Source: Epithemia pelagica (lineage: Eukaryota; Protista; Bacillariophyta). From it: a stretch of 64,000 nucleotides of DNA. Below are positions 2,066-58,779 of the stretch, piece after piece. How positions within the stretch are numbered: position 1 is the first letter of the stretch; each line of letters begins with the position of its first letter. The notes beneath the pieces were generated by a model that worked only from the letters and a program-made list of their open reading frames with translations, was not told the DNA's origin and did no database searches. The stretch lies in assembly GCA_946965045.2 (NCBI GenBank), contig OX337241.1, positions 2,108,001 to 2,172,000 on the forward strand, in the 5' to 3' direction. A program made the position numbers and the translations under genes.

Positions 2066-2293
2066 ATGAACGGAACCAATGTACCAGAACGTAAAGACGA
2101 TCAACAATCAACCCACCCACTCTCTTCTTCACAACAATCCTTTGAAGACAACAAGACAAGCACGATGCCGACTACCTCTGATTCTGATTTCAACCGTCCG
2201 CTTTATGTGCCGCACATGGAAGACTCCTTCAGATTGGAAACCTTTGCTCACCTTCTTCTCCCCAAGCAAGACCATTTCACCACAATATATAAC
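2066..2293 (+). CDS. Probable 5' part of the transposon partner gene, cut off by the YR cassette (ATG at 2066 or 2165)
   Basis: Protein-like frame (MPTTSDSDFNRPLYVPHMEDSFRLETFAHLLLPKQDHFTTIYN) that runs into the palindrome; joining 2293 to 4906 gives an open frame. Confidence 0.45.
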
Positions 2294-2425
2294 GAGGGTA
2301 GGCTGCTTAGGGCACGAGTGCCGTTACAGCTGTTGGCGCACGAGTGCGTGCAGCTTCAGCTGCCGCACGAGTGCGCCAACAGCTGTAACGGCACGAGTGC
2401 CCTAAGCGTAGCCTAGCCTCAGTTA
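2290..2425. repeat. ~135-bp near-perfect palindrome with four same-strand GCACGAGTGC motifs
   Basis: gcttagggcac..gttacagctgttggcgcac pairs with gtgcgccaacagctgtaac..gtgccctaagc; centre gcagct-tc-agctgc; two tandem GA/AG mismatches in the stem. Confidence 0.95.
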
Positions 2426-2429
2426 AAAA

Positions 2430-2493
2430 TGTAATTATACAGTGTCGATACTTTATTCCAAAGTAGACCGAGTGCTATTATTCTAGTAGTCGC
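2430..2493 (+). repeat. Left subterminal inverted repeat of the YR element
   Basis: Reverse complement aligns to 4841-4902 at about 54/64 positions, first 22 identical. Confidence 0.9.
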
Positions 2494-2737
2494 TATTTGC
2501 TATCCCCAGTAGAAATCCTCTAATGTTCCTCTAGTATTCCTTGGCATCAAGTTTTTCTTGGCATCAAATTCTATGCGTGACGCGTGACACAATTCAAATT
2601 TCCACACTATGGTGTATAGTCCAACATTATTTTCTATAGTAGGGCTTGCGCTCACGCCAGCTTGGAATTTGCCTCCGGACCACATTTGCACCCTCATTCT
2701 TCTGCCAAAACAATCAAACAGCAGGGAAACACTCACC

Positions 2738-4709
2738 ATGGCACCCAAGAACCATTCCAGGCGCTCCAAGCGCATTTCAGAGCGACAGAATCCTTTGACT
2801 GATTCCACCAACAAAGTGGGGAAGCCCCTTGGTGCCAAAAAGGCATCCAAAGGGAGCAACAGGGCCAAAAAGGTGCCCAAGAAGGCCCCTCCTATGGCTG
2901 GGCCCCAAGGACAGCTCCCATCTGCTTCCTTGATGGTGCCAGTGCCCAAACAGGCACCCAAAGCACCTCCTATTGGTAAGTTCTTATATGGTTGATTGTT
3001 TTGTCAGTGCTGGATGCATGGTTTGCATTGGAACTAACCTTTCTTGGCTTTTTTGTGTTGCGCAGCCACTATGACTCTTCCCACAAGTGTCGCAACTGCT
3101 GCTGAAGCGTTGTCAACCACAACCACCACTGTGACTACCACTACTCATCTGGACCAAGAGTTCCAGATTGCCCGTGCAACTCATGGGGACATGCGGGGCT
3201 TTTTTATGGTGAACGAAGCTGCGGAACGCAATGCAGCTGCCCTAAGTGAAGCTTTCGACGTGGCAATGCATGCTGATGTGGGAGCATCCGAGGCCCAGAA
3301 CGCCATCTCTAACAGTGCTACTGGAAACTCTCGGGGTTACGTTCGTGCGCAAGGTTGTCGTGTTGAGGAGTTCTTGCAAGCTGGTCGGGACAACCCCTCT
3401 TTGGCGAAGTTTATGGAGATTGTGGACGACAACCTTAACAAATCTGTCGTTGCATCACCGACAGACCAACCTCTTTTTGTTAAGTTGATCAATAAGGGTG
3501 GAAACCCTTTTGATACTAAAGCAATTGGGTTTATGAACCGTCTCCTTCTGAACTGGTTCTGGCATGGACTGATCAAGAATGAAGAAAAGCCCCCTCAGCC
3601 TGGGACCATCGCTACCTATTACAGGTCTCTACTTTCAGCGATGAAACGACACTTTGGACTGCCCTACTACCCCTCCAACTTCAAGGGCTTCGATGGATCA
3701 TTTGAGTCCGTAACCAAAGAAGCCATGAATAATTGGGCTAGACGTGATCCTACCTATGGCACATGCCCTACACGCACGGAGTTTACGGACGAGCACTGTG
3801 AGATTGTCAAAAACTACATCAAATCGGATCGCTTCAACATTCACAACCCAGTGGACCTCCGTCAGCTTCTGTACTTTGTTCTTGGTTTCACTTGTGCTCT
3901 TCGTGCTCGGGAGGAGCACTATTCTCTTGAATTTAGCCACTTTCGGTTTGGTACTTATGAATCTGGACACGAATTGGCAGGTATGGAGTATGTTCAATGT
4001 GAACTCCCTTCGCTACTTAGCAAGGGGCACAATATTACTCTCGGTAAGTAATTTGTAATCCTCCAGCGTGATCACTACAGTTGTAACATTGTACTAACAT
4101 TTCTACACTCTTTATTCTCTATCTACAGGAAATGCCTATGCACGTTCTAGATTCCACAACGATGGCTACCGTTTCCCTGTGATTGATGGTGAGCTCTTTA
4201 ATCTGGGCTATATCATCAAGCTAGTGCGATCTAAAACTCCTCCCAACCAAAACTACCTCTACTGCCATGAATTGGGTCGACGAGAGAAAGCTGCTTGGGC
4301 TAGTATGGGGTTCCCAGATTTTGTCTTCTCTGAAACGAAGCGAATGGGGATTAATATGGTTGGGAAACTATTCCCTAGCTTGTTGGCGCGATGTGGACTA
4401 CCTAATACCCTACGCGGACAGCTACGACACTATGCATTGACTACGCTTGCCAACACTCCGGGGATGAATCCGTCTGAAATTGCCCGCACGGCACGCCATA
4501 AGTCCCTTACATCTCAAGCAGCTTACATCCGTGTGAATCGTACAAGTGAGGTGAATCGTGCTTCTGCTCTCACTGGGGTCTTGGCTACGAATGCTCCCAA
4601 GACTGGAGATGCCATCCCACAACCCAGTGGACACGGTCCTCAGCCGCCGGTGCGAAACCCCTACATTCGTCCTTCGCAGAGCGCTTCTGGTCCAGTCTAT
4701 CCTCTTTGA
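2738..4709 (+). CDS. Tyrosine recombinase, Crypton-like, 3 exons (2738-2975, 3066-4043, 4129-4709), ~598 aa
   Basis: GT-AG introns 2976-3065 and 4044-4128 with CTAAC branch sites join three ORFs in frame; catalytic R (LRAREEH, 3902), K (KGHN), GQLRH (R at 4425), RHKS (H at 4497), Y (AAYIR, 4524); basic N-terminus. Confidence 0.88.
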
Positions 4710-4840
4710 GAATTTCGACGTTAAGCGTGCCTAGATAGTAGATCTAGCCTTGACCATATTCTTCCAGTGCCATTACACGTGATCAAGACTAAAAATTACT
4801 AGAATAATGACACTGGACGATTTTTACTTAGAGACCAGTG

Positions 4841-4902
4841 GCGACTACTAGAATAATAGCACGAGTCTACTTAGAAGAAAGTATCGTCATAGTGTAATTA
4901 CA
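4841..4902 (-). repeat. Right subterminal inverted repeat of the YR element
   Basis: Partner of 2430-2493; TACTAGAATAAT also repeated at 4797-4808; contains GCACGAGT like the palindrome. Confidence 0.9.
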
Positions 4903-4905
4903 ACC

Positions 4906-6618: not shown

Positions 6619-9600
6619 TTACTCATCATCACTATCATCAGAATCTTCGTCCATTTGTCGTAGAAGTTCCGCAGTCTGTTTGATATTGTTCTCCACTTGG
6701 TCGACAGTTTGGCCATACAGATCCTCTTTACCAAGATGCCAATCGAATACCAGGTCTGTTCGTTCTTCCCCCTCGCCTTGTGCAACGTCTGATACCATAT
6801 CAGAGATTAATTGGCCGAATACGATGGTCCCCCCCAAGTTCCGAACCCAATTCTTGTTGTATTCCTGTTCGGTCTCTGTCAAGTTCAGTAGGTAATCTCG
6901 CATGAACTGTTCCGTATACTCCCCAAGAAACAGAGTCCGTCGTTGGATCCATCTTGCCATAGGTAATAAGCGTGTCTGTTGTCCTTTCCCCTTGTTCACT
7001 GCCCCTCCCCTTTGCGTCCTACTGAAGTAGAAGGACTTGAAAAGACTGTTGAAAGCTGTATTGTTTTGAGAAACCGGTTCGTAAAGATCACAAAGCTCTC
7101 ACATAAACTTACCCTCCCATCCTTGTTGCGAATGTCTTGCCAGGTTCTTCCAATGAAGTAAATACTCGGCAATATGACCCGCTCCAAGCATATGCCCATA
7201 ATTGGTCACTCCTTCCGAGTTATGTAGCTCGACCCACTCCTTAAAAAAAAGATCCACGTGTTTTTGGAACTCCCACACCTGTGTTTCCGTGAAATCTTCC
7301 TTGGATCTGAGACGCCTGATCGCCTCCGAGTAGTGACTCACACTGCGGACCCACTTTTCTTGGAGTTCGCCATCCACGATAGAGACCACTACAAGCTTGA
7401 CGATGCATTGAAGCATGTCCCGAACTTGGCCATTATCGAGAACCACCTTCCCCACCTGTAGCTTCTCCTTATCATATGGGAACAACCACTGCTGTGCGTT
7501 TTTTCCGTTCCGAGAATCTCCCGATTTGCCAAATCTTGGACCTTGTCTCTGTAGGCCTCAGCAGCCGTCTTGTCCGAATACTTATCGTGAGTCGTCATCC
7601 ATGGTAGGATACCTTGTTTGGAGTTTGTCATTCCAATCTTAAACAACATCGATAGGATTTTAATCCCCATTCGTATCTCGAGATGCAAGATACAAGGGAC
7701 CATGTCCATCATGACGACCAATGCTGACTTGGCATTGTTTTTCCCAAACTTCTTCAGAGCGTCGGACGATTCGCGATAAACCCACTCTGACGTCAATTGA
7801 ACCTTCAACCTTTCTTGGCGCTCAATCATCAATCCATCTAAAGGCAGTCCCCGTAATTTTAGGTCATTTGTCAGATGCTGGGTGTACGTTGAACGGCTCT
7901 TGCGAGTGGCCTTCGAAACATCGAAATGAATCGACGTAATCTCTTTTCTTTGCATCGGAGTGGATTGGAGTCTCGGGTCGAGATGTGGCGTTATCTTGGA
8001 TTTGGACCAGATGGTCTCCAATTGTTTCGTATGTTTAGGTAGTCCAGCTTCGAACGATTTCACTTCTCGTTGCAACGCGGCGCGATGCTCCTTGGTCAGC
8101 ATTTTATGATGCCGACACTCCCAGTTAGGATCATCGTCCAAGTGACCCATTTTCTCACACCACTCGCACTTTGAAGGTTTGTCAGTGGCACGTAGATGGA
8201 GGTCTTTGCTATGAATGGGGCATTTCGTGCACGGGTAGTTGGCATTCTTGGCAGCCCCCCCCACAACCACAAAGCTTCCACTCGCAGGACATGTCACAGT
8301 TTGTGACGATCCATAACGCGAGGATGCCAAGTAATCGTGGGAGGATGGTGTTCGCTGCCTCAGCGATTTCAGCAAACAAGACGGAAAAGATTCCTCGGAC
8401 GTTTGCCTTGGTTTCACTGCCCATTACGCAGACCAAAGGTGTGACGTCGTTCCGAGATGACGTCAGCGGGTTGGATTTGTCGTTGAATTTAATCCCCGCA
8501 AGAGTATGATTTGTGTAGTTGGTCAATGTGGCACCATCTAGTGTCTGTGCCATCATCAGATTCCTCAGCATGCCTTCTGCAACTGCCTTTCTTGCAAGAA
8601 TCACTTCCCGAACCATGTCTGCTACTCGGAAATAGAACCCCTCTGTTCCGTCTTTGGAGTTTCGGATCATTCGAAAGGGGATCTTTTCGGCGCCGAATCT
8701 CTCCATCATTGCTGCAATCTTCTTGACAGAGCCAGAACTCGGGATAAGCGTCCGCTTATGTCTCTCTCCATTGTTCTCGCATCGTCGAAGGATCTCGAGT
8801 CCCTCGTAGTTGAGGACTCCTCCCGCGAGATCCATTTCCTTCAATATTCGGAAAGGAGAATACACATACCGACGCATGTGGAGTCGGTACGTATCCATCA
8901 TCTTGTCTCTCAACTGAAGCCCATGAATATCGTCGTATAGCATCATTTCCACAAGCAGTTTGAAGAACAGTTCTGTTCTGTGGCTGTCAGTGGCATGATT
9001 TTGCACGCTTCTAAGAATCACCATCTTTATGTGCGCTACAATCTGTGCCGACTTGACGTAATCGGTGCACGATCTTGGTACATTGCAGAAAGCTTGTTGT
9101 AAAGCTTCCATTGATTTCAATTTCTCACTCATTTTTCTCATTTTGTCGTCATTTTTCTTGAGTTGAATCTGTTGAGCTTTTTTTTGTCGAAGTAATTCGC
9201 GGCGTTCTTCTTTCAGTAAGTCAATCCTTGCTTGAAGAAGTGAGATCTGGTTTTGTGGCGAAAGCGGGGGATCTATAGATGTTGCACTGTCGCAATTTGG
9301 ACTTTGGAGAGAGAGTGGGCTCCTTTCTCGAAGAGTACCAGGTGGGGAAGCGATGTGCTGAGTGTCAGTGTTCGGAGATTGTGTGTCTCTGGATGGAGAA
9401 AGTTGTTGTGTATTGGAAACGGTAGTGGTATTGACTGGTGAGGGTACAGGATTACTTCGTCGTTGGGATGGTGGAGATCTTGGTGGATGTGACTGGGAGT
9501 TGTCAACGACGATAGTCCTGTCGTCTCCAGTGTTAGACGACGGGTAGTCAGATGGTTCTCGTGACGATGACGAAGAGACGATCGTTGCCCTATCTGTTGT

Positions 9601-16800: not shown

Positions 16801-19800
16801 CACCCACCCATTCCGGTCGCACTCCTCTTGAGGCTCTCTCCGGACGCCCACCCGACATTACTCATCTCTTGTTCTTTCCTTTCTGGGATGAGGTTTACTA
16901 CCGTGTCGACCCCGCTGAACCCAATTCCGGTTCATATCCATCTTCTTCTGATGAGAAACTTGGCCACTGGGTTGGTTTTGCTCACAACGTTGGTGATTCT
17001 TTTACTTGGAAGATTCTCACCCAGGATAACCAGATAATCTACCGTTCTGCCGTTCGCCGTGTTGCATCCACTACACCTAACCTACGTGTGGATCGACCTT
17101 CAGGGGAGGATTCGTCTGAGAAGGATGACAATGATAAGCAAGCTGACACTGTCTTCATTCGCAGTGATAGTGAAGATCCATCCAAACCAATGCCCACGAT
17201 CGATTTTGACGACATGATAGGACGCACATTCCTATGCGACACAGAAGAAAATGGGGAGCGACACCGTGCACGTGTCATCAAACGAGTCATTGATCTTAAT
17301 GAAGAAGCAACGAAACAGGAAGAACGTGTCAAGTACATCTACCGAAAGACAAATTCTGATGTTGATGAGATGATATCCTATAATCAACTCATGGAGTATA
17401 TCGAACAAGATAACCAAGCTCAAACCTCTGGAGATAATCTTTTCAGGTTCAGGGACGTCATTGCCCATCAAGGCCCACTGAACACAACTGATCCAGATTA
17501 CAAGGGGAGCAAATATAATTTGCTTGTTGATTGGGAAACTGGGGAGACTACCTATGAACCTTTATCACTCATCGCCAATGATGATCCGATCACTGTAGCA
17601 ATTTATGGAAAGAAACATGGTTTACTCAACGAACCTGGATGGAAGCATTTGAAACGTTATGTCAAAACAAGCAAACGTCTCATTCGAGCAGCCAAACAGT
17701 CAAGGATTAAACAAGTTCACCATTCCGTCAAGTATAAGTTTGGATTCCAAGTACCGCGCAATTATGAGGAAGCTGTCGCTCTTGATAAACAACATGGCAA
17801 CACAAGGTGGCAGGATGCAACAGAATTAGAATTGTCACAGATCCAGTCCTACAAGACATTCAAGGATTTTGGGAAAGCCATCTTCATTAAAGGGAAAGTA
17901 TCCAATGCACCTGAAGGATATCATAAGATACGTGTACATCTTGTCTTTGACGTAAAACATGATGGACGACATAAAGCAAGACTTGTCGCAGATGGACATT
18001 TCACAAAAGAACCTGTTGAGACAATCTATTTAGGTGTTGTTTCCATTCGCAACCTCCGCATTGCCTTATTCCTGGGTACTTTGAATGACTTGGAAATATG
18101 GGGAGCAGATATTGGAAACGCATATCTGGAAGCCTTGACAGGGGAGAAAATTTTCATTGTCGCAGGACCTGAATTCAAGGAATTAGAAGGTCACATCCTG
18201 ATTATATACAAGGCACTTTATGGATTGAAGTCATCAGGCGCACGCTGGCATGATGTCTTATTCGATGTTTTGACAGACATGGGATTTTCACCAAGCAAAG
18301 CAGATCCGGATATCTGGATGAGGAAAGCACCTGGAGAAGACTGTTACGAATACATTGCCGTATACGTTGATGACTTAGCCATTATTTCTACTGATCCTGG
18401 GAATATCTGCAAGATCCTGAAGGAGAAATACAACTTCAAACTCAAAGGAGATGGACCTATTGATTTCCACTTGGGATGTTGTTACACCAAGGATTCTGAT
18501 GGAACATTAGTAGCAGATCCAAGACGCTACATTGGTAAGATGATGGACACTTTCGAACGAATCTTCAAGGAGAAACCCAAGAAAGCCAAAACACCTCTTA
18601 TTGGTGGAGACCATCCTGAATTGGATGATTCTGAGCTCCTTGATGAAGAAGGTACTAGCCATTTCCAAACTCTGATTGGACAACTCCAATGGGTGATCAC
18701 TATTGGTCGTTTCGATGTCTTCACCGCTACAATGACGCTATCACGCTTTCGTGCTGCTCCGAGGAAAGGACATCTTGATAGAGCCAAGCGTATCTATGGA
18801 TACCTTGCACATCTCCCAGAAGGCGCAATCAGATTTAGGATTGGAGAGCCTGATTATTCAAGTCTTCCTACCCAAGAATTTGATTGGACTCGCACTGTCT
18901 ATTCGAATGCAAGTGAACGTATTCCTGAAGACTGCCCAACACCTCTTGGCCGCTATGTTACCACAACTCATTATGTTGATGCCAATCTCATGCATGACAT
19001 AGTCACTGGTAAATCCGTCACTGCTGTTCTACATTTGTTGAACGGAACACCTATTGACTGGTACAGCAAGAGACAGAGCACGGTGGAAACTGCTACCTAT
19101 GGATCCGAGTTTGTGGCTGCAAGGACAGCAATAGATCAGATTACAGAATTACGACATTCTCTCCGCTACCTTGGAGTACCTATCCGAGAGCGAAGTTACA
19201 TGTACGGAGATAACAGATCTGTTGTGCTCAATGCAACCGTTCCTCATTCCATACTATCCAAGAGACACCATCTTCTGTCATACCACCGAGTTCGTGAAGC
19301 CATCGCAGCAAAGTATGTTGCATTCTACCGTTGGTCCTCGGAGGGGATGTAGGATCCCAGCACGTGCCTAGTTACAATAGCCCAAAATATTACTGTAGCT
19401 CGTTTTTATAGTTAGCGTATATAAGTAATATTAGATGAAAATTAAGCGGGCCAAAATGTGAGCGCACGAACGAGACACAACAGAGAGAGCAAAGTAACAC
19501 GACAACAATCCAACAGCACAAGAGGTAAAAACAACACAACAATGGAACCAACAGCACAACAAAGCAAGCACAGGGACAATCAGTGCAAGGCAAGGCAACA
19601 CAACAACCAACCACAATGAGCACAGGGACAACCAAAGCAACACAACAACCAACCACCGCGAGCACAGGGACAACCAAAGCGACACAACAACCAACCAAAG
19701 CAAGCACCGGGACAACCAAAGCAACACAACACCAAACACAGCAATCAAAGAGACAGGAAACAGGGCAGGGCAACCACATCAACAAAGGCAAGGCAACCAA

Positions 19801-19911
19801 CAAGCAACATAGGAAGACAACAAGCAACAACACAATCAGCCAACCGAAGACACAGAGAAACACAACAACCAACCAAAGTCACAGTCAAAGGTCCAACAGT
19901 TCAAGAACAAC

Positions 19912-19951
<40 letters not shown>

Positions 19952-21095
19952 AACAACCAAGCAGTGGAACAGGAAGAACATGAACCATCCACAGATACCA
20001 CAAGAGCCAACAAACCCCAACCAGCCGAAGCAAGGACACAGCATCAGACCATTCACCAGAAACAAAACAAAGAACAAGACATGGTTAGAGATGCCATGGA
20101 TTAAGATGCAGCAATCAAACAAAAACAGGAGGTGGAACATACCTATTGGAAGCAGGAAGATTTTGTTGGAAGAAAAAAGGGAGATTCTGCTCGTCCATGT
20201 GCTGTAACAAAGTAGAAAGCACATCTGTTAGTAACAAGAGCATTAAGAATGGTAAGAGAAGGATCAGACTGCACTTACTTTGATTGCTGGATGCCTGCCA
20301 TGGATGTTTGTGTCCATGGTCATCCACCGAATGCAAATTTTGATCGAACGAGGAAAAATGAGACGAGAGATGGAATGAGAAACCTGCCACAGTGACAGTG
20401 TGGCCCGTAATCCGCACGTAGAAGCAGTACAAAGAAAATGCGACCGGAGAATGCTGGCGCGCACAAATTCAGACGTGCGTGACACATGACCCGGTCACAA
20501 GTCATAAGCAATGATTGACGGTCGGTTGGGGTAGACACGATCAATCTAATTAGCAACCATCTTCTTAAGTAGCTCTGCCTAAGTGATTAGGAAAGTGCCT
20601 AAGTATCAGAATCTTACATCTAAGTAGGTCTATTATATCGGATTGTTGTCGGCATGTGGAATGTCTAAGAACTAAGATTACTTAGTCCCCTCCTCGGACG
20701 CAACGGAAGCGCACGACATCTGCTCCTCGTTGTGAGTCTCGTCGGGGGCACTTCTCGGGGCCTAGCTCCTCGGCGGGCAATAGGTCCTCGTCGTGTACTG
20801 CCCCAAATCCACTTAACGTGGATTTGATAGGGCAGTACACTCCTCGGACCTATTGCCCTTCTCGGAGTTAGGCACCCTCGTCGTGCCTCCCTCCTCGTCT
20901 CACTCCTCGGAGCAGATGTAGAACTACTACTGGAAAGATGGAAAGACCAACCCTGCCGATATCCTTAGCAAACATTGGGATTTCGTATCTATTTGGCCCA
21001 TGCTCAAGCCATTGTTGTTTTGGAAAGGAGAAGTTCAAGACCTCAACAAATCCAATGATGACAAGGCTGAAACGACGAGTTGTGGGGAGTGTTAG
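13806..21095 (+). CDS. Copia gag-pol polyprotein interrupted at 19328 by a 1.6-kb insertion
   Basis: PR (IDRGANGG), IN (DSVFSD..SDGG..AENRY), RT (YVDDL), RH (YVDANL..GSEF..GDN); frame resumes at 20931 (WKDGKTNPAD) and ends in the LTR. Confidence 0.95.
19568..19745 (+). repeat. 42-bp minisatellite (3 units plus 1 degenerate)
   Basis: gcac(a/c)gggacaaccaaagc(a/g)acacaac.. at 19620, 19662 and 19704; degenerate unit at 19568. Confidence 0.9.
19915..19948. repeat. (AG)n microsatellite
   Basis: About 17 AG units. Confidence 0.97.
20716..20919. repeat. 204-nt imperfect hairpin with periodic pyrimidine internal loops
   Basis: Stems acatctgctcc/ggagcagatgt, gtgag/ctcac, gcctagctcc/ggagttaggc, gggcaataggtcc/ggacctattgccc, gtgtactgccc/gggcagtacac, caaatccac/gtggatttg; terminal loop ttaac. 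Confidence 0.95.
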
Positions 21096-56000: not shown

Positions 56001-58779
56001 CGCTCTCATGAACGCCACTGGTTGCCCTGCCAACACCTGGCTTCTTTGCCTTGAGTATGTCTGTGACTTATTGAACCATACATCATCACCCACCCATTCC
56101 GGTCGCACTCCTCTTGAGGCTCTCTCCGGACGCCCACCCGACATTACTCATCTCTTGTTCTTTCCTTTCTGGGATGAGGTTTACTACCGTGTCGACCCCG
56201 CTGAACCCAATTCCGGTTCATATCCATCTTCTTCTGATGAGAAACTTGGCCACTGGGTTGGTTTTGCTCACAACGTTGGTGATTCTTTTACTTGGAAGAT
56301 TCTCACCCAGGATAACCAGATCATCTACCGTTCTGCCGTTCGCCGTGTTGAATCCACTACACCTAACCTACATGTGGATCGACCTTCAGGGGAGGATTCG
56401 TCTGAGAAGGATGACAATGATAAGCAAGCTGACACTGTCTTCATTTGCAGTGATAGTGAAGATCCATCCAAACCAATGCCCACGATCGATTTTGACGACA
56501 TGATAGGACGCACATTCCTATGCGACACAGAAGAAAATGGGGAGCGACACCGTGCACGTGTCATCAAACGAGTCATTGATCTTAATGAAGAAGCAACGAA
56601 ACAGGAAGAACGTGTCAAGTACATCTACCGAAAGACAAATTCTGATGTTGATGAGATGATATCCTATAATCAACTCATGGAGTATATCGAACGAGATAAC
56701 CAAGCTCAAACCTCTGGAGATAATCTTTTCAGGTTCAGGGACGTCATTGCCCATCAAGGCCCACTGAACACAACTGATCCAGATTACAAGGGGAGCAAAT
56801 ATAATTTGCTTGTTGATTGGGAAACTGGGGAGACTACCTATGAACCTTTATCACTCATCGCCAATGATGATCCGATCACTGTAGCAATTTACGGAAAGAA
56901 ACATGGTTTACTCAACGAACCTGGATGGAAGCATTTGAAACGTTATGTCAAAACAAGCAAACGTCTCATTCGAGCAGCCAAACAGTCAAGGATTAAACAA
57001 GTTCACCATTCCGTCAAGTATAAGTTTGGATTCCAAGTACCACGCAATTATGAGGAAGCTGTCGCTCTTGATAAACAACATGGCAACACAAGGTGGCAGG
57101 ATGCAACAGAATTAGAATTGTCACAGATCCAGTCCTACAAGACATTCAAGGATTTTGGGAAAGCCATCTTCATTAAAGGGAAAGTATCCAATGCACCTGA
57201 AGGATATCATAAGATACATGTACATCTTGTCTTTGACGTAAAACATGATGGACGACATAAAGCAAGACTTGTCGCAGATGGACATCTCACAAAAGAACCT
57301 GTTGAGACAATCTATTCAGGTGTTGTTTCCATTCGCAACCTCCGCATTGCCTTATTCCTGGGTGCTTTGAATGACTTGGAAATATGGGGAGCAGATATTG
57401 GAAACGCATATCTGGAAGCCTTGACAGGGGAGAAAATCTTCATTGTCGCAGGACCTGAATTCAAGGAATTAGAAGGTCACATCCTGATTATATACAAGGC
57501 ACTTTATGGATTGAAGTCATCAGGCGCACGCTGGCATGATGTCTTATTCGATGTTTTGACCGACATGGGATTTTCACCAAGCAAAGCAGATCCGGATATC
57601 TGGATGAGGAAAGCACCTGGAGAAGACTGTTACGAATACATTGCCGTATACGTTGATGACTTAGCCATTATTTCTACTGATCCTGGGAATATCTGCAAGA
57701 TCCTGAAGGAGAAATACAACTTCAAGCTCAAAGGAGATGGACCTATTGATTTCCACTTAGGATGTTGTTACACCAAGGATTCTGATGGAACACTAGTAGC
57801 AGATCCAAGACGTTACATTGCTAAGATGATGGACACTTTCGAACGCATCTTCAAGGAGAAACCCAAGAAAGCCAAAACACCTCTTATTGGTGGAGACCAT
57901 CCTGAATTGGATGATTCTGAGCTCCTTGATGAAGAAGATACTAGCCATTTCCAAACTCTGATTGGACAACTCCAATGGGTGATCACTATTGGTCGTTTTG
58001 ACGTCTTCACCGCTACAATGACGCTATCACGCTTTCGTGCTGCTCGGAGGAAAGGACATCTTGATAGAGCCAAGCGTATCTATGGATACCTTGCACATCT
58101 CCCAGAAGGCGCAATCAGATTTAGGATTGGAGAGCCTGATTATTCAAGTCTTCCTACCCAAGAATTTGATTGGACTCGCACTGTCTATTCGAATGCAAGT
58201 GAACGTATTCCTGAAGACTGCCCAACACCTCTTGGCCGCTATGTTACCACAACTCATTATGTTGATGCCAATCTCATGCATGACATAGTCACTGGTAAAT
58301 CTGTCACTGCTGTTCTACATTTGTTGAACGGAACACCTATTGACTGGTACAGCAAGAGACAGAGCACGGTGGAAACTGCTACCTATGGATCCGAGTTTGT
58401 GGCTGCAAGGACAGCAATAGATCAGATTACAGAATTACGACATTTTCTCCGCTACCTTGGAGTACCTATCCGAGAGCGAAGTTACATGTACGGAGATAAC
58501 AGATCTGTTGTGCTCAATGCAACCGTTCCTCATTCCATACTATCCAAGAGACACCATCTTCTGTCATACCACCGAGTTTGTGAAGCCATCGCAGCAAAGT
58601 ATGTTGCATTCTACTGGAAAGATGGAAAGACCAACCCTGCCGATATCCTTAGCAAACATTGGGATTTTGTATCTATTTGGCCCATGCTCAAGCCATTGTT
58701 GTTTTGGAAAGGAGAAGTTCAAGACCTCAACAAATCCAATGATGACAAGGCTGAAACGACGAGTTGTGGGGAGTGTTAG
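53092..58779 (+). pseudogene. Family A gag-pol with a single nonsense codon (TAG 53341-53343)
   Basis: Copy 1 has CAG here; the rest of the frame is open through RH to the LTR. Confidence 0.93.

Follow-up and report, generated by a model that had tools for sequence, protein, structure and literature searches.

A gene-less, hairpin-ended insertion in the diatom Epithemia pelagica as a probable member of a superfamily of Crypton-like tyrosine recombinase transposons

A stretch of 64,000 nucleotides from the diatom Epithemia pelagica (assembly GCA_946965045.2, contig OX337241.1, positions 2,108,001 to 2,172,000 of the forward strand), referred to here as the window, contains a copia element whose polyprotein gene is interrupted by a 1.6-kb insert (positions 19329-20926 of the window). 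The insert carries no gene and ends in a long hairpin. It probably belongs, as a non-autonomous element, to a diatom superfamily of Crypton-like DNA transposons with a tyrosine recombinase (YR), and would be moved in trans by the recombinase of one of two larger families (B or C) of the same genome. Alignment with a sister copia copy (window ~58480-58690) delimits a clean insertion. The empty site in the sister copy reads GCATTCTAC followed directly by TGGAAAG, and the filled site reads GCATTCTAC-CGTTGG...GTAGAACTA-CTAC-TGGAAAG, the insert itself ending in ...GAACTA.

A clean insertion had been proposed in a preliminary description of the sequence, and it is borne out both by this alignment and by assembled contigs of public sequencing runs, which constituted the read evidence. 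In these contigs a joint from 19324 to 20927 skips 1602 bases, with an ambiguity of 4 bases. Contigs from two runs of the organism independently contain the interior of the insert together with its left junction, so that a misassembly, a possibility raised in the preliminary description, is unlikely. Metagenome contigs contain the copia element with an empty site as well as the window's own flank variants; because copia is multi-copy, the empty contigs do not prove polymorphism at this locus.

The insert was described at the outset as non-coding, devoid of terminal inverted repeats (TIRs) and bounded by an imperfect direct repeat, and all three statements stand. A Pfam scan of all open reading frames (ORFs) of the insert gave no domain, and an Rfam scan gave no family at threshold, a sub-threshold match to mir-299 (E = 0.067) lying far below the gathering score. 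No TIRs or long terminal direct repeats were found in the insert, and the only repeat common to its ends is an imperfect direct repeat of 18 nt (19335-19352 versus 20904-20921, 89% identity). The exclusion of a miniature inverted-repeat transposable element (MITE), a short interspersed nuclear element and a solo long terminal repeat (LTR) likewise holds, the MITE being ruled out by the lack of both TIRs and a true target duplication. The features of the insert and of its host element are listed in Table 1.

Table 1. Features of the insert and the interrupted copia element, in window coordinates
Feature	Position	Strand	Remarks
Host copia polyprotein ORF, 1848 aa	13806..19352	+	Truncated by the insert; the sister copy reads on through the site
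Left junction 4-mer CTAC	19325..19328	+	Looks target-derived here; element-borne (at least TAC) judging by other copies
Left terminal region common to autonomous elements	19329..19431	+	Element positions 1-103 with the CTAC prefix correspond to window 19325-19427
Left-end strand of joint-spanning helices	19328..19346	+	CCGTTG 19328-19333, GTCC 19334-19337, TC loop, GGAGGGG 19340-19346
Left copy of terminal direct repeat, TCCTCGGAGGGGATGTAG	19335..19352	+	Repeat family D6; conserved at left ends of families A to D
A/C-rich, T-poor filler	19460..20130	+	Absent from autonomous elements
Subterminal segment	20687..20715	+	CCCCTCC 20687-20693, GGAC 20696-20699 and CAACGG 20701-20706 pair with the left end
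AAGCGCACG, bubble side opposite the crossover	20707-20715	+	Fold of joined ends
204-nt rod hairpin	20716..20919	+	Fold z = -10.7; covariation; CTCG strand bias
Right copy of terminal direct repeat; 3' strand of hairpin basal helix	20904..20921	+	Repeat comparison; fold
AGAACTA, last 7 nt, from hairpin foot to crossover 20926/20927	20920..20926	+	Constant as AGAAYTA or AGATATA in 34 right ends
Right junction 4-mer CTAC, the target's own CNAC	20927..20930	+	CNAC in 29/29; equals the empty site at L004 and L046

The source assembly (60.5 Mb in 23 contigs) was searched for related elements. Full-length copies of the 1.6-kb element number four, including that of the window, and more than 50 further matches are to the hairpin only. 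A pattern built from the last 19 nt detected 39 right ends, versus 4 for the reversed control pattern. All-against-all comparison of the loci separated four families. Family A comprises the four gene-less 1.6-kb copies; family B (~5.2 kb, range 5.0-5.3 kb) and family C (~4.5 kb) each encode a two-exon protein; and family D consists of ~25 gene-less, MITE-like copies of ~375 bp that share 92-99% identity.

Families A to D are alike in their termini only. In the window element the left 103 bp match family B at 81% identity and the right 241 bp at 92%; elsewhere the two show no significant similarity. To family C the left 103 bp are 80% identical. Common termini around an unrelated, gene-less interior identify the insert as a non-autonomous DNA transposon, and on the strength of these terminal alignments it appears to be a derivative of elements of the family B/C type. 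The preliminary description assigned the element to no class and noted no transposase; it can in fact be classified, as its left 103 bp and right ~240 bp are common to YR-encoding elements of ~5.2 kb. Its ends are multi-copy, conserved across the four families and associated with a target preference, and no match to an LTR or Helitron family was obtained, contrary to the alternative of a single-copy sequence with such ends.

The coding capacity of families B and C resides in two long ORFs on the minus strand (in the orientation used here), which overlap in different frames in every copy. In a transcript-derived protein of 1027 aa from the diatom Entomoneis paludosa the two ORFs correspond to contiguous, collinear segments (residues 257-504 and 515-716), and they are therefore considered to be two exons. 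Several family B copies have both exons open; all other ORFs of the 5.2-kb element are of low complexity. An exhaustive profile search yielded 143 relatives, including Entomoneis and Cylindrotheca proteins, and a word-index protein search only 4 close relatives. A profile of 56 exon 2 sequences matches XerA (E = 0.015) and an archaeal Xer, and in the alignment to XerA the residues R157xxR160 fall on the HxxR motif, and H183 and Y192 coincide with the second His and the catalytic Tyr, respectively.

An AlphaFold (AF2) model computed from the 56-sequence alignment reached a mean confidence score (pLDDT, predicted local distance difference test) of 87.5; a first model from 6 sequences (pLDDT 31.7) was unusable. 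In an exhaustive structural search (VIA), 25 of the 30 listed matches were tyrosine recombinases, type IB topoisomerases, protelomerases or YR-derived folds (QRICH1, Ndc10). The Z values were 6.3 for both Cre and XerA, 5.7 for IntI and 5.4 for the Crypton-derived domain of QRICH1, and lambda Int and Flp were also matched. Foldseek against the Protein Data Bank (PDB) gave no match at E <= 0.001, its top rows being nevertheless YR proteins, and comparison of one exon with the PDB by sequence gave nothing meaningful. Pfam scanning revealed no domain in the family B ORFs and weak Phage_integrase matches in 10 of the 56 homologues, and DUF3504 was matched by 2 of the 56. No reverse transcriptase (RT), RNase H or other enzymatic domain was detected by Pfam in ten long homologues (447-1027 aa), and neither Pfam nor inspection of the ORFs disclosed a Rep, HUH or helicase protein in the full-length partners. 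Taken by profile, modelled fold and conserved residues together, the C-terminal half of the two-exon protein, encoded by exon 2, is a predicted tyrosine recombinase.

The hairpin of ~204 nt reported in the preliminary description was confirmed. Its folding energy is -66 kcal/mol, versus -32.7 +/- 3.1 for shuffled sequences (z = -10.7, with none of 200 shuffles equal). Its stems, 5-13 bp long, alternate with 5x5 loops in which TCNTC lies opposite TCNTC. The reported one-sided occurrence of CTCG in both arms was also reproduced: the plus strand of 20690-20926 contains CTCG 11 times and CGAG not at all, the window mean being 0.74 per 237 nt. On the minus strand the loops read GANGA, with CGAG opposite CGAG.

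Conservation of the fold was assessed in 17 aligned right ends from families A to D, with slid alignments and 500 shuffles as controls. The 69 stem pairs are paired in 98.4% of the cells, and 12 pairs have changed on both sides, versus 1-2 in the slid controls; none of the 500 shuffles reached the observed covariation. Even the central bases of the loops pair and co-vary (columns 105/237: GC in 9, CG in 8). These data show that the hairpin fold is under selection, and covariation as such says nothing about use of the fold by the recombinase. The CTCG boxes are themselves conserved in sequence, at a regular spacing of 12-18 nt.

Sheared G.A pairs in tandem are unusually stable when set in a Y-GA-R context. 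On the minus strand CGAG opposite CGAG can form C-G, G.A, A.G and G-C pairs; the plus strand would have T.C and C.T mismatches. The presence of CTCG on one and the same strand in both arms is explained by the capacity of the minus strand for such G.A-type loops, and it is this strand, the coding strand of the recombinase, that is predicted to fold.

Two further copies are of note with respect to the hairpin. In a family A copy (L003:2863-3116, G000:C16) ~55 apical nucleotides of the left arm, among them the loop TCGTC, have been swapped for the exact complement of the right arm (GAGGA...), so that the top of the hairpin is a perfect palindrome. Intrastrand template switching on an extruded DNA hairpin would yield such a structure, of which this is a single case. 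In a family B copy (L011/L022, G000:C9:3052775-3054897) a foreign insertion of ~2.1 kb occupies the apical loop region of the hairpin.

In families B and C, in a fourth autonomous family (L078) and in a second, distinct YR element within the window (2290-4905), the hairpin lies upstream of the YR gene and the coding strand is the one with the purine GA loops. The L078 element encodes an exon-2 protein (P0004, 46% identical), and its hairpin, with arms of 48 nt and GACGAG/GAGGAG loops on the coding strand, is situated ~2.3 kb upstream of the YR exon (features at L078:5592-5713 and 8001-8750). The second window element has exons at 3044-4051 and 4179-4709 on the plus strand, homologous to the family B recombinase (hhalign 96.5%), and an upstream palindrome of 110 nt (2300-2410) with GCACGAGTGC boxes that carry CGAG on the coding strand; this palindrome differs from that of families A to D. 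At L079, which encodes the YR homologue P0007, no long hairpin was found within 6 kb.

Such a location is what would be expected if the hairpin acted as RNA, whether by forming a structured leader at the 5' end of the YR mRNA or by giving rise to small RNAs with a regulatory or silencing effect on the family. Tandem G.A pairs are stable in RNA as well, so the loops on the coding strand would stabilize a transcript, and the weak miRNA-like Rfam match mentioned above points in the same direction. The hairpin is retained, however, in the gene-less derivatives of 375 bp and 1.6 kb, it terminates 7 nt from the crossover, and its extension pairs with the opposite end of the element, outside any internally initiated transcript. 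A function at the RNA level is accordingly judged improbable.

This extension became apparent when the right end, one 4-mer and the left end were joined in silico and the minimum-energy fold was computed. In families A, B and C the rod continues over the joint. In the window element, 20701-20706 pairs with 19328-19333, 20696-20699 with 19334-19337 and 20687-20693 with 19340-19346. Between the helices a bubble of ~9x10 nt remains, which holds the crossover (AGAACTA^CTA opposite AAGCGCACG). The joint duplex of the window element scores -21.6, versus -10.5 +/- 2.4 for shuffled sequences (0 of 300 equal), and over families A, B and C the values of z range from -3.2 to -5.1, with 0-3 of 300 shuffles equal. 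Compensatory differences occur in all three helices: CCCCTCC/GGAGGGG in family A versus CCCCCCC/GGGGGGG in family C, GGAC/GTCC versus GGAG/CTCC in family D, and CAACGG/CCGTTG versus TATAG/CTATA, again in family D. The terminal direct repeat therefore represents one further period of the rod, as it pairs, once the ends are joined, with the subterminal segment that directly precedes the hairpin.

The junctions of 29 independent insertions with both ends were compared. The left 4-mer is CTAC in 28 of the 29, irrespective of the right 4-mer, and the right 4-mer is CNAC in all 29 (N being T in 16, G in 7, A in 5 and C in 1). In all 13 copies with a base other than T, this base is found on the right side. 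The target logo is W-G(-8, 25/29)-T(-7, 28/29)-N6-C-N-A-C, with insertion at WGT-N6-^CNAC. The GT is nearly invariant at exactly 6 nt upstream of CNAC, is preceded by A or T, and forms with the AC a dyad, GT...AC, 8 nt apart. A model in which the element's right end serves as a guide or half-site was rejected, as the target GT-N6-CNAC and the right-end GT-N7-CTAC are one base out of register.

Empty sites were available for three insertions. For L004, a copy of family A, there is an exact empty paralogue (...GCTGTG-CAAC-AGCAAC...), the filled site having CTAC on the left and CAAC on the right; an 80%-identical empty paralogue of L046 reads CAAC; and six near-identical copies of the host repeat of the family B copy L035 read ...GTAGTTGA-CAAC-TCATGATT, the filled left junction being CTAC. 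Because all three empty sites read CAAC, the variable base is attributed to the target, and the CTAC at the left of the filled sites therefore travels with the element. Pattern searches found no empty site for L003, nor for L035 when both of its non-collinear flanks were used. The right flank of L035 (G000:C17:1092000-1101999), CGACACATCC..., does not continue the repeat of the left flank, and its flanks have therefore been rearranged after or during insertion.

By these comparisons the crossover would be a single point just 5' of the target CNAC, or one base into it, and there is no true duplication of the target. The duplicated CTAC that the preliminary description took for a 4-bp target duplication is hence only apparent. 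The left copy is borne by the element and the right one comes from the target, which at this locus happened to be CTAC; the duplication is a coincidence of the commonest target.

The junctions also bear on the mode of strand exchange. Exchange of a single strand predicts junctions of one type, which is what the 13 informative junctions (13/13) and the three concordant empty sites display. A staggered double-strand exchange over a mismatched overlap predicts two types at 1:1. The same YR element could nevertheless recombine in the conventional double-stranded manner, with directional repair of a short heteroduplex, which gives the same one-sided pattern, and with the 210-bp palindrome serving as a cruciform or as an accessory protein-binding array (CCTCGG boxes every 15-18 bp on one face). 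The conserved, regularly spaced boxes suit such an array, and the C, A and C of the 4-mer are common to element and target, as they would be in an overlap region; Cryptons are, moreover, classically modelled as double-stranded circles with short direct repeats (PMC3212892). A binding array, however, needs no complementarity between its spacers, yet complementarity has been kept through 12 double changes and over the joint with the far end of the element, and an unrepaired heteroduplex is at odds with 13 junctions alike. This alternative is regarded as rather unlikely, albeit a substantial one.

The proposed course of events is as follows. The insert would retain only the ends that the recombinase needs, namely ~100 bp on the left and ~240 bp on the right, including the rod hairpin, and the YR of the ~5.2-kb family B or of family C would act on it in trans. 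The recombination site would form when the two ends meet, the rod continuing over the joint and the crossover being placed in the ~9x10-nt bubble. The YR would then cut the bubble of the folded strand, one strand would be exchanged with the target, and replication would complete the event. Integration is site-selective at WGT-N6-^CNAC, with one fixed crossover point 7 nt from the foot of the hairpin. From this analysis we tentatively suggest that the substrate may be one folded DNA strand, most likely the minus strand with its tandem G.A loops, and that a single strand exchange may be resolved by replication.

With regard to classification, the elements are termed Crypton-like because, by definition, they are DNA elements with a YR as their only enzyme, and the matches to DUF3504 and the structural match to QRICH1 are the only, and indirect, hints of a place among the Crypton clades (F, S, A, I). 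Crypton DNA transposons were reportedly the subject of Goodwin et al. in 2003. The YR residues are present (apart from one His-to-Arg replacement, considered below), RT and RNase H are absent, which sets the elements apart from DIRS, Ngaro and PAT, and there are no TIRs or LTRs. Crossover repeats of 4-6 bp flank Cryptons, whose classical model is a double-stranded circle recombining at short direct repeats (PMC3212892). Here a 4-mer is present at both junctions but is asymmetric (CTAC on the left in 28/29, CNAC on the right), and it therefore does not constitute a symmetrical crossover repeat. The likeness to Cryptons further extends to the similar short sequence at both junctions, to the stramenopile host, and to non-autonomous derivatives that are reduced to the termini and more numerous than the autonomous copies. 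A bug and medaka have non-autonomous Cryptons (CryptonI-1N1_RPro and CryptonA-1N1/2_OL), and CryptonS elements are known from oomycetes and a diatom, their termini being mostly TATGG (PMC3212892), in contrast to the CTAC/CNAC found here.

The elements differ from Cryptons in several other respects. Their conserved end is a rod hairpin of ~200 nt with strand-specific mismatch loops, the fold spans the joint, the left 4-mer is constant and the right one is taken from the target, and HxxR has Arg in place of its His. In Kojima and Jurka 2011 (PMC3212892) Cryptons are described without structured ends, and the text contains neither 'hairpin' nor 'palindrom'; a literature search of limited coverage likewise found nothing linking Cryptons to end hairpins. 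The novel part is a Crypton-like element with a structured, joint-spanning recombination site.

A subterminal hairpin, the lack of both TIRs and a target site duplication, and insertion beside a fixed tetranucleotide are also found in the IS200/IS605 group (IS608) and in Replitrons. IS608 inserts 3' of TTAC, and Replitrons are similar in the layout of their ends. These shared traits raise the alternative of a non-autonomous Helitron, Helentron or HUH-type element. In the IS200/IS605 and Replitron systems, however, the enzymes are HUH/Y1 transposases or Rep, whereas the full-length partners of the present element encode a YR of the integrase/Cre fold and nothing else. Nor do ends and target fit: a Helitron or Helentron was rejected because the ends read CTACC.../...GAACTA and not 5'-TC...CTRR-3', because the target is GT-N6-CNAC and not A^T/T^T, and because the partner is a YR. 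Such an origin is largely refuted and must be considered highly improbable.

Closer parallels to the proposed strand exchange are provided by bacterial systems. In the integron attC site and the CTX phage, tyrosine recombinases act on folded, single-stranded hairpin substrates. The present elements resemble the attC x attI reaction of IntI and the XerCD-mediated reaction of CTX in having a YR and an imperfect hairpin that is kept in structure over sequence. They also share strand-specific unpaired or mismatched features and a crossover that adjoins the fold or lies inside it, in a bubble; the junctions are those expected of a single strand exchange resolved by replication, and IntI itself is among the structural matches. 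In contrast to these bacterial and experimentally proven reactions, we are dealing with a eukaryotic nuclear transposon for which strand and mechanism are inferred. The hairpin is, moreover, 3-4 times longer than that of attC and is zipped by repeated CGAG/CGAG loops. It is conceivable, though doubtful, that these would be the first eukaryotic transposons shown to use for their movement a folded single DNA strand which a YR cuts and rejoins, in a nuclear equivalent of attC and CTX-phage recombination, the substrate being a CGAG/CGAG-zipped rod of ~300 nt whose site exists only at joined ends.

Several observations weigh against the interpretation as a YR-mobilized element with a folded recombination site. 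The two exons were searched separately, and the AlphaFold model and its structural matches cover half a catalytic domain; the sequence scores for the YR call are weak and the Z values modest. The usual His of HxxR is Arg in this clade, and the first catalytic Arg (FRCLEV, exon 1) is placed by position only. In family D, the most abundant of the four, the joint-spanning pairing is not significant (z = -0.4). The one-sided junctions could stem from directional mismatch repair after a double-strand exchange. No circle junction was seen in the public-run contigs, and no mobilization was observed. Finally, the window copy is a divergent member of family A, its nearest relative in the assembly sharing just 74% identity over the whole length, and 88% within the right-hand 700 bp.

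This divergence also bears on the age of the insertion. The host copia and its sister copy are ~99% identical around the site, so that the insertion is recent, and the earlier statement that it is younger than an already young copia copy is upheld. The accompanying claim that the element moved recently is plausible, but its nearest relative is distant, and no source copy is present in the assembly. An identity of 74-88% would fit either a conservative cut-and-paste event or the loss of the source copy. Young copies do exist elsewhere in the superfamily: the family A copies L002 to L004 share 96-99% identity, and family D copies up to 99.5%.

The interior of the insert holds the A/C-rich filler. 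Its plus strand has 48% A, 27% C and 5% T, an extreme asymmetry between strands; the long plus-strand ORFs of the insert come from this T-poor stretch. The filler includes 42-bp tandem repeats (19591-19737) and a (GA)n run, (GA)17, at ~19916-19950. In contigs of runs X1 and X2 a variant lacks 284 bases within 19385-19670, in the A/C-rich 42-bp repeats, which probably reflects variation in tandem-repeat length or reads of another copy. Family B carries comparable low-complexity tracts (poly-ACA/GTT) at the position that matches the filler of the window element.

Of all classes of eukaryotic DNA transposons, Cryptons are understood least. Descriptions of their ends mention no distinctive features, their mechanism is known solely by analogy, and conserved host genes of the DUF3504 family derive from them. 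The superfamily described here combines sharply defined ends, a structural recombination site backed by covariation, a clear target logo, recombinase genes that appear intact and small derivatives (375 bp and 1.6 kb), and as such constitutes a testable system. For annotation, the case shows that hairpin-ended diatom repeats which appear 'unclassifiable' are assignable to YR elements. Should the single-strand reading be true, a strategy so far known only in bacteria and phages would also work in the eukaryotic nucleus, and the elements would represent a compact, site-selective integration system that operates without target duplication.

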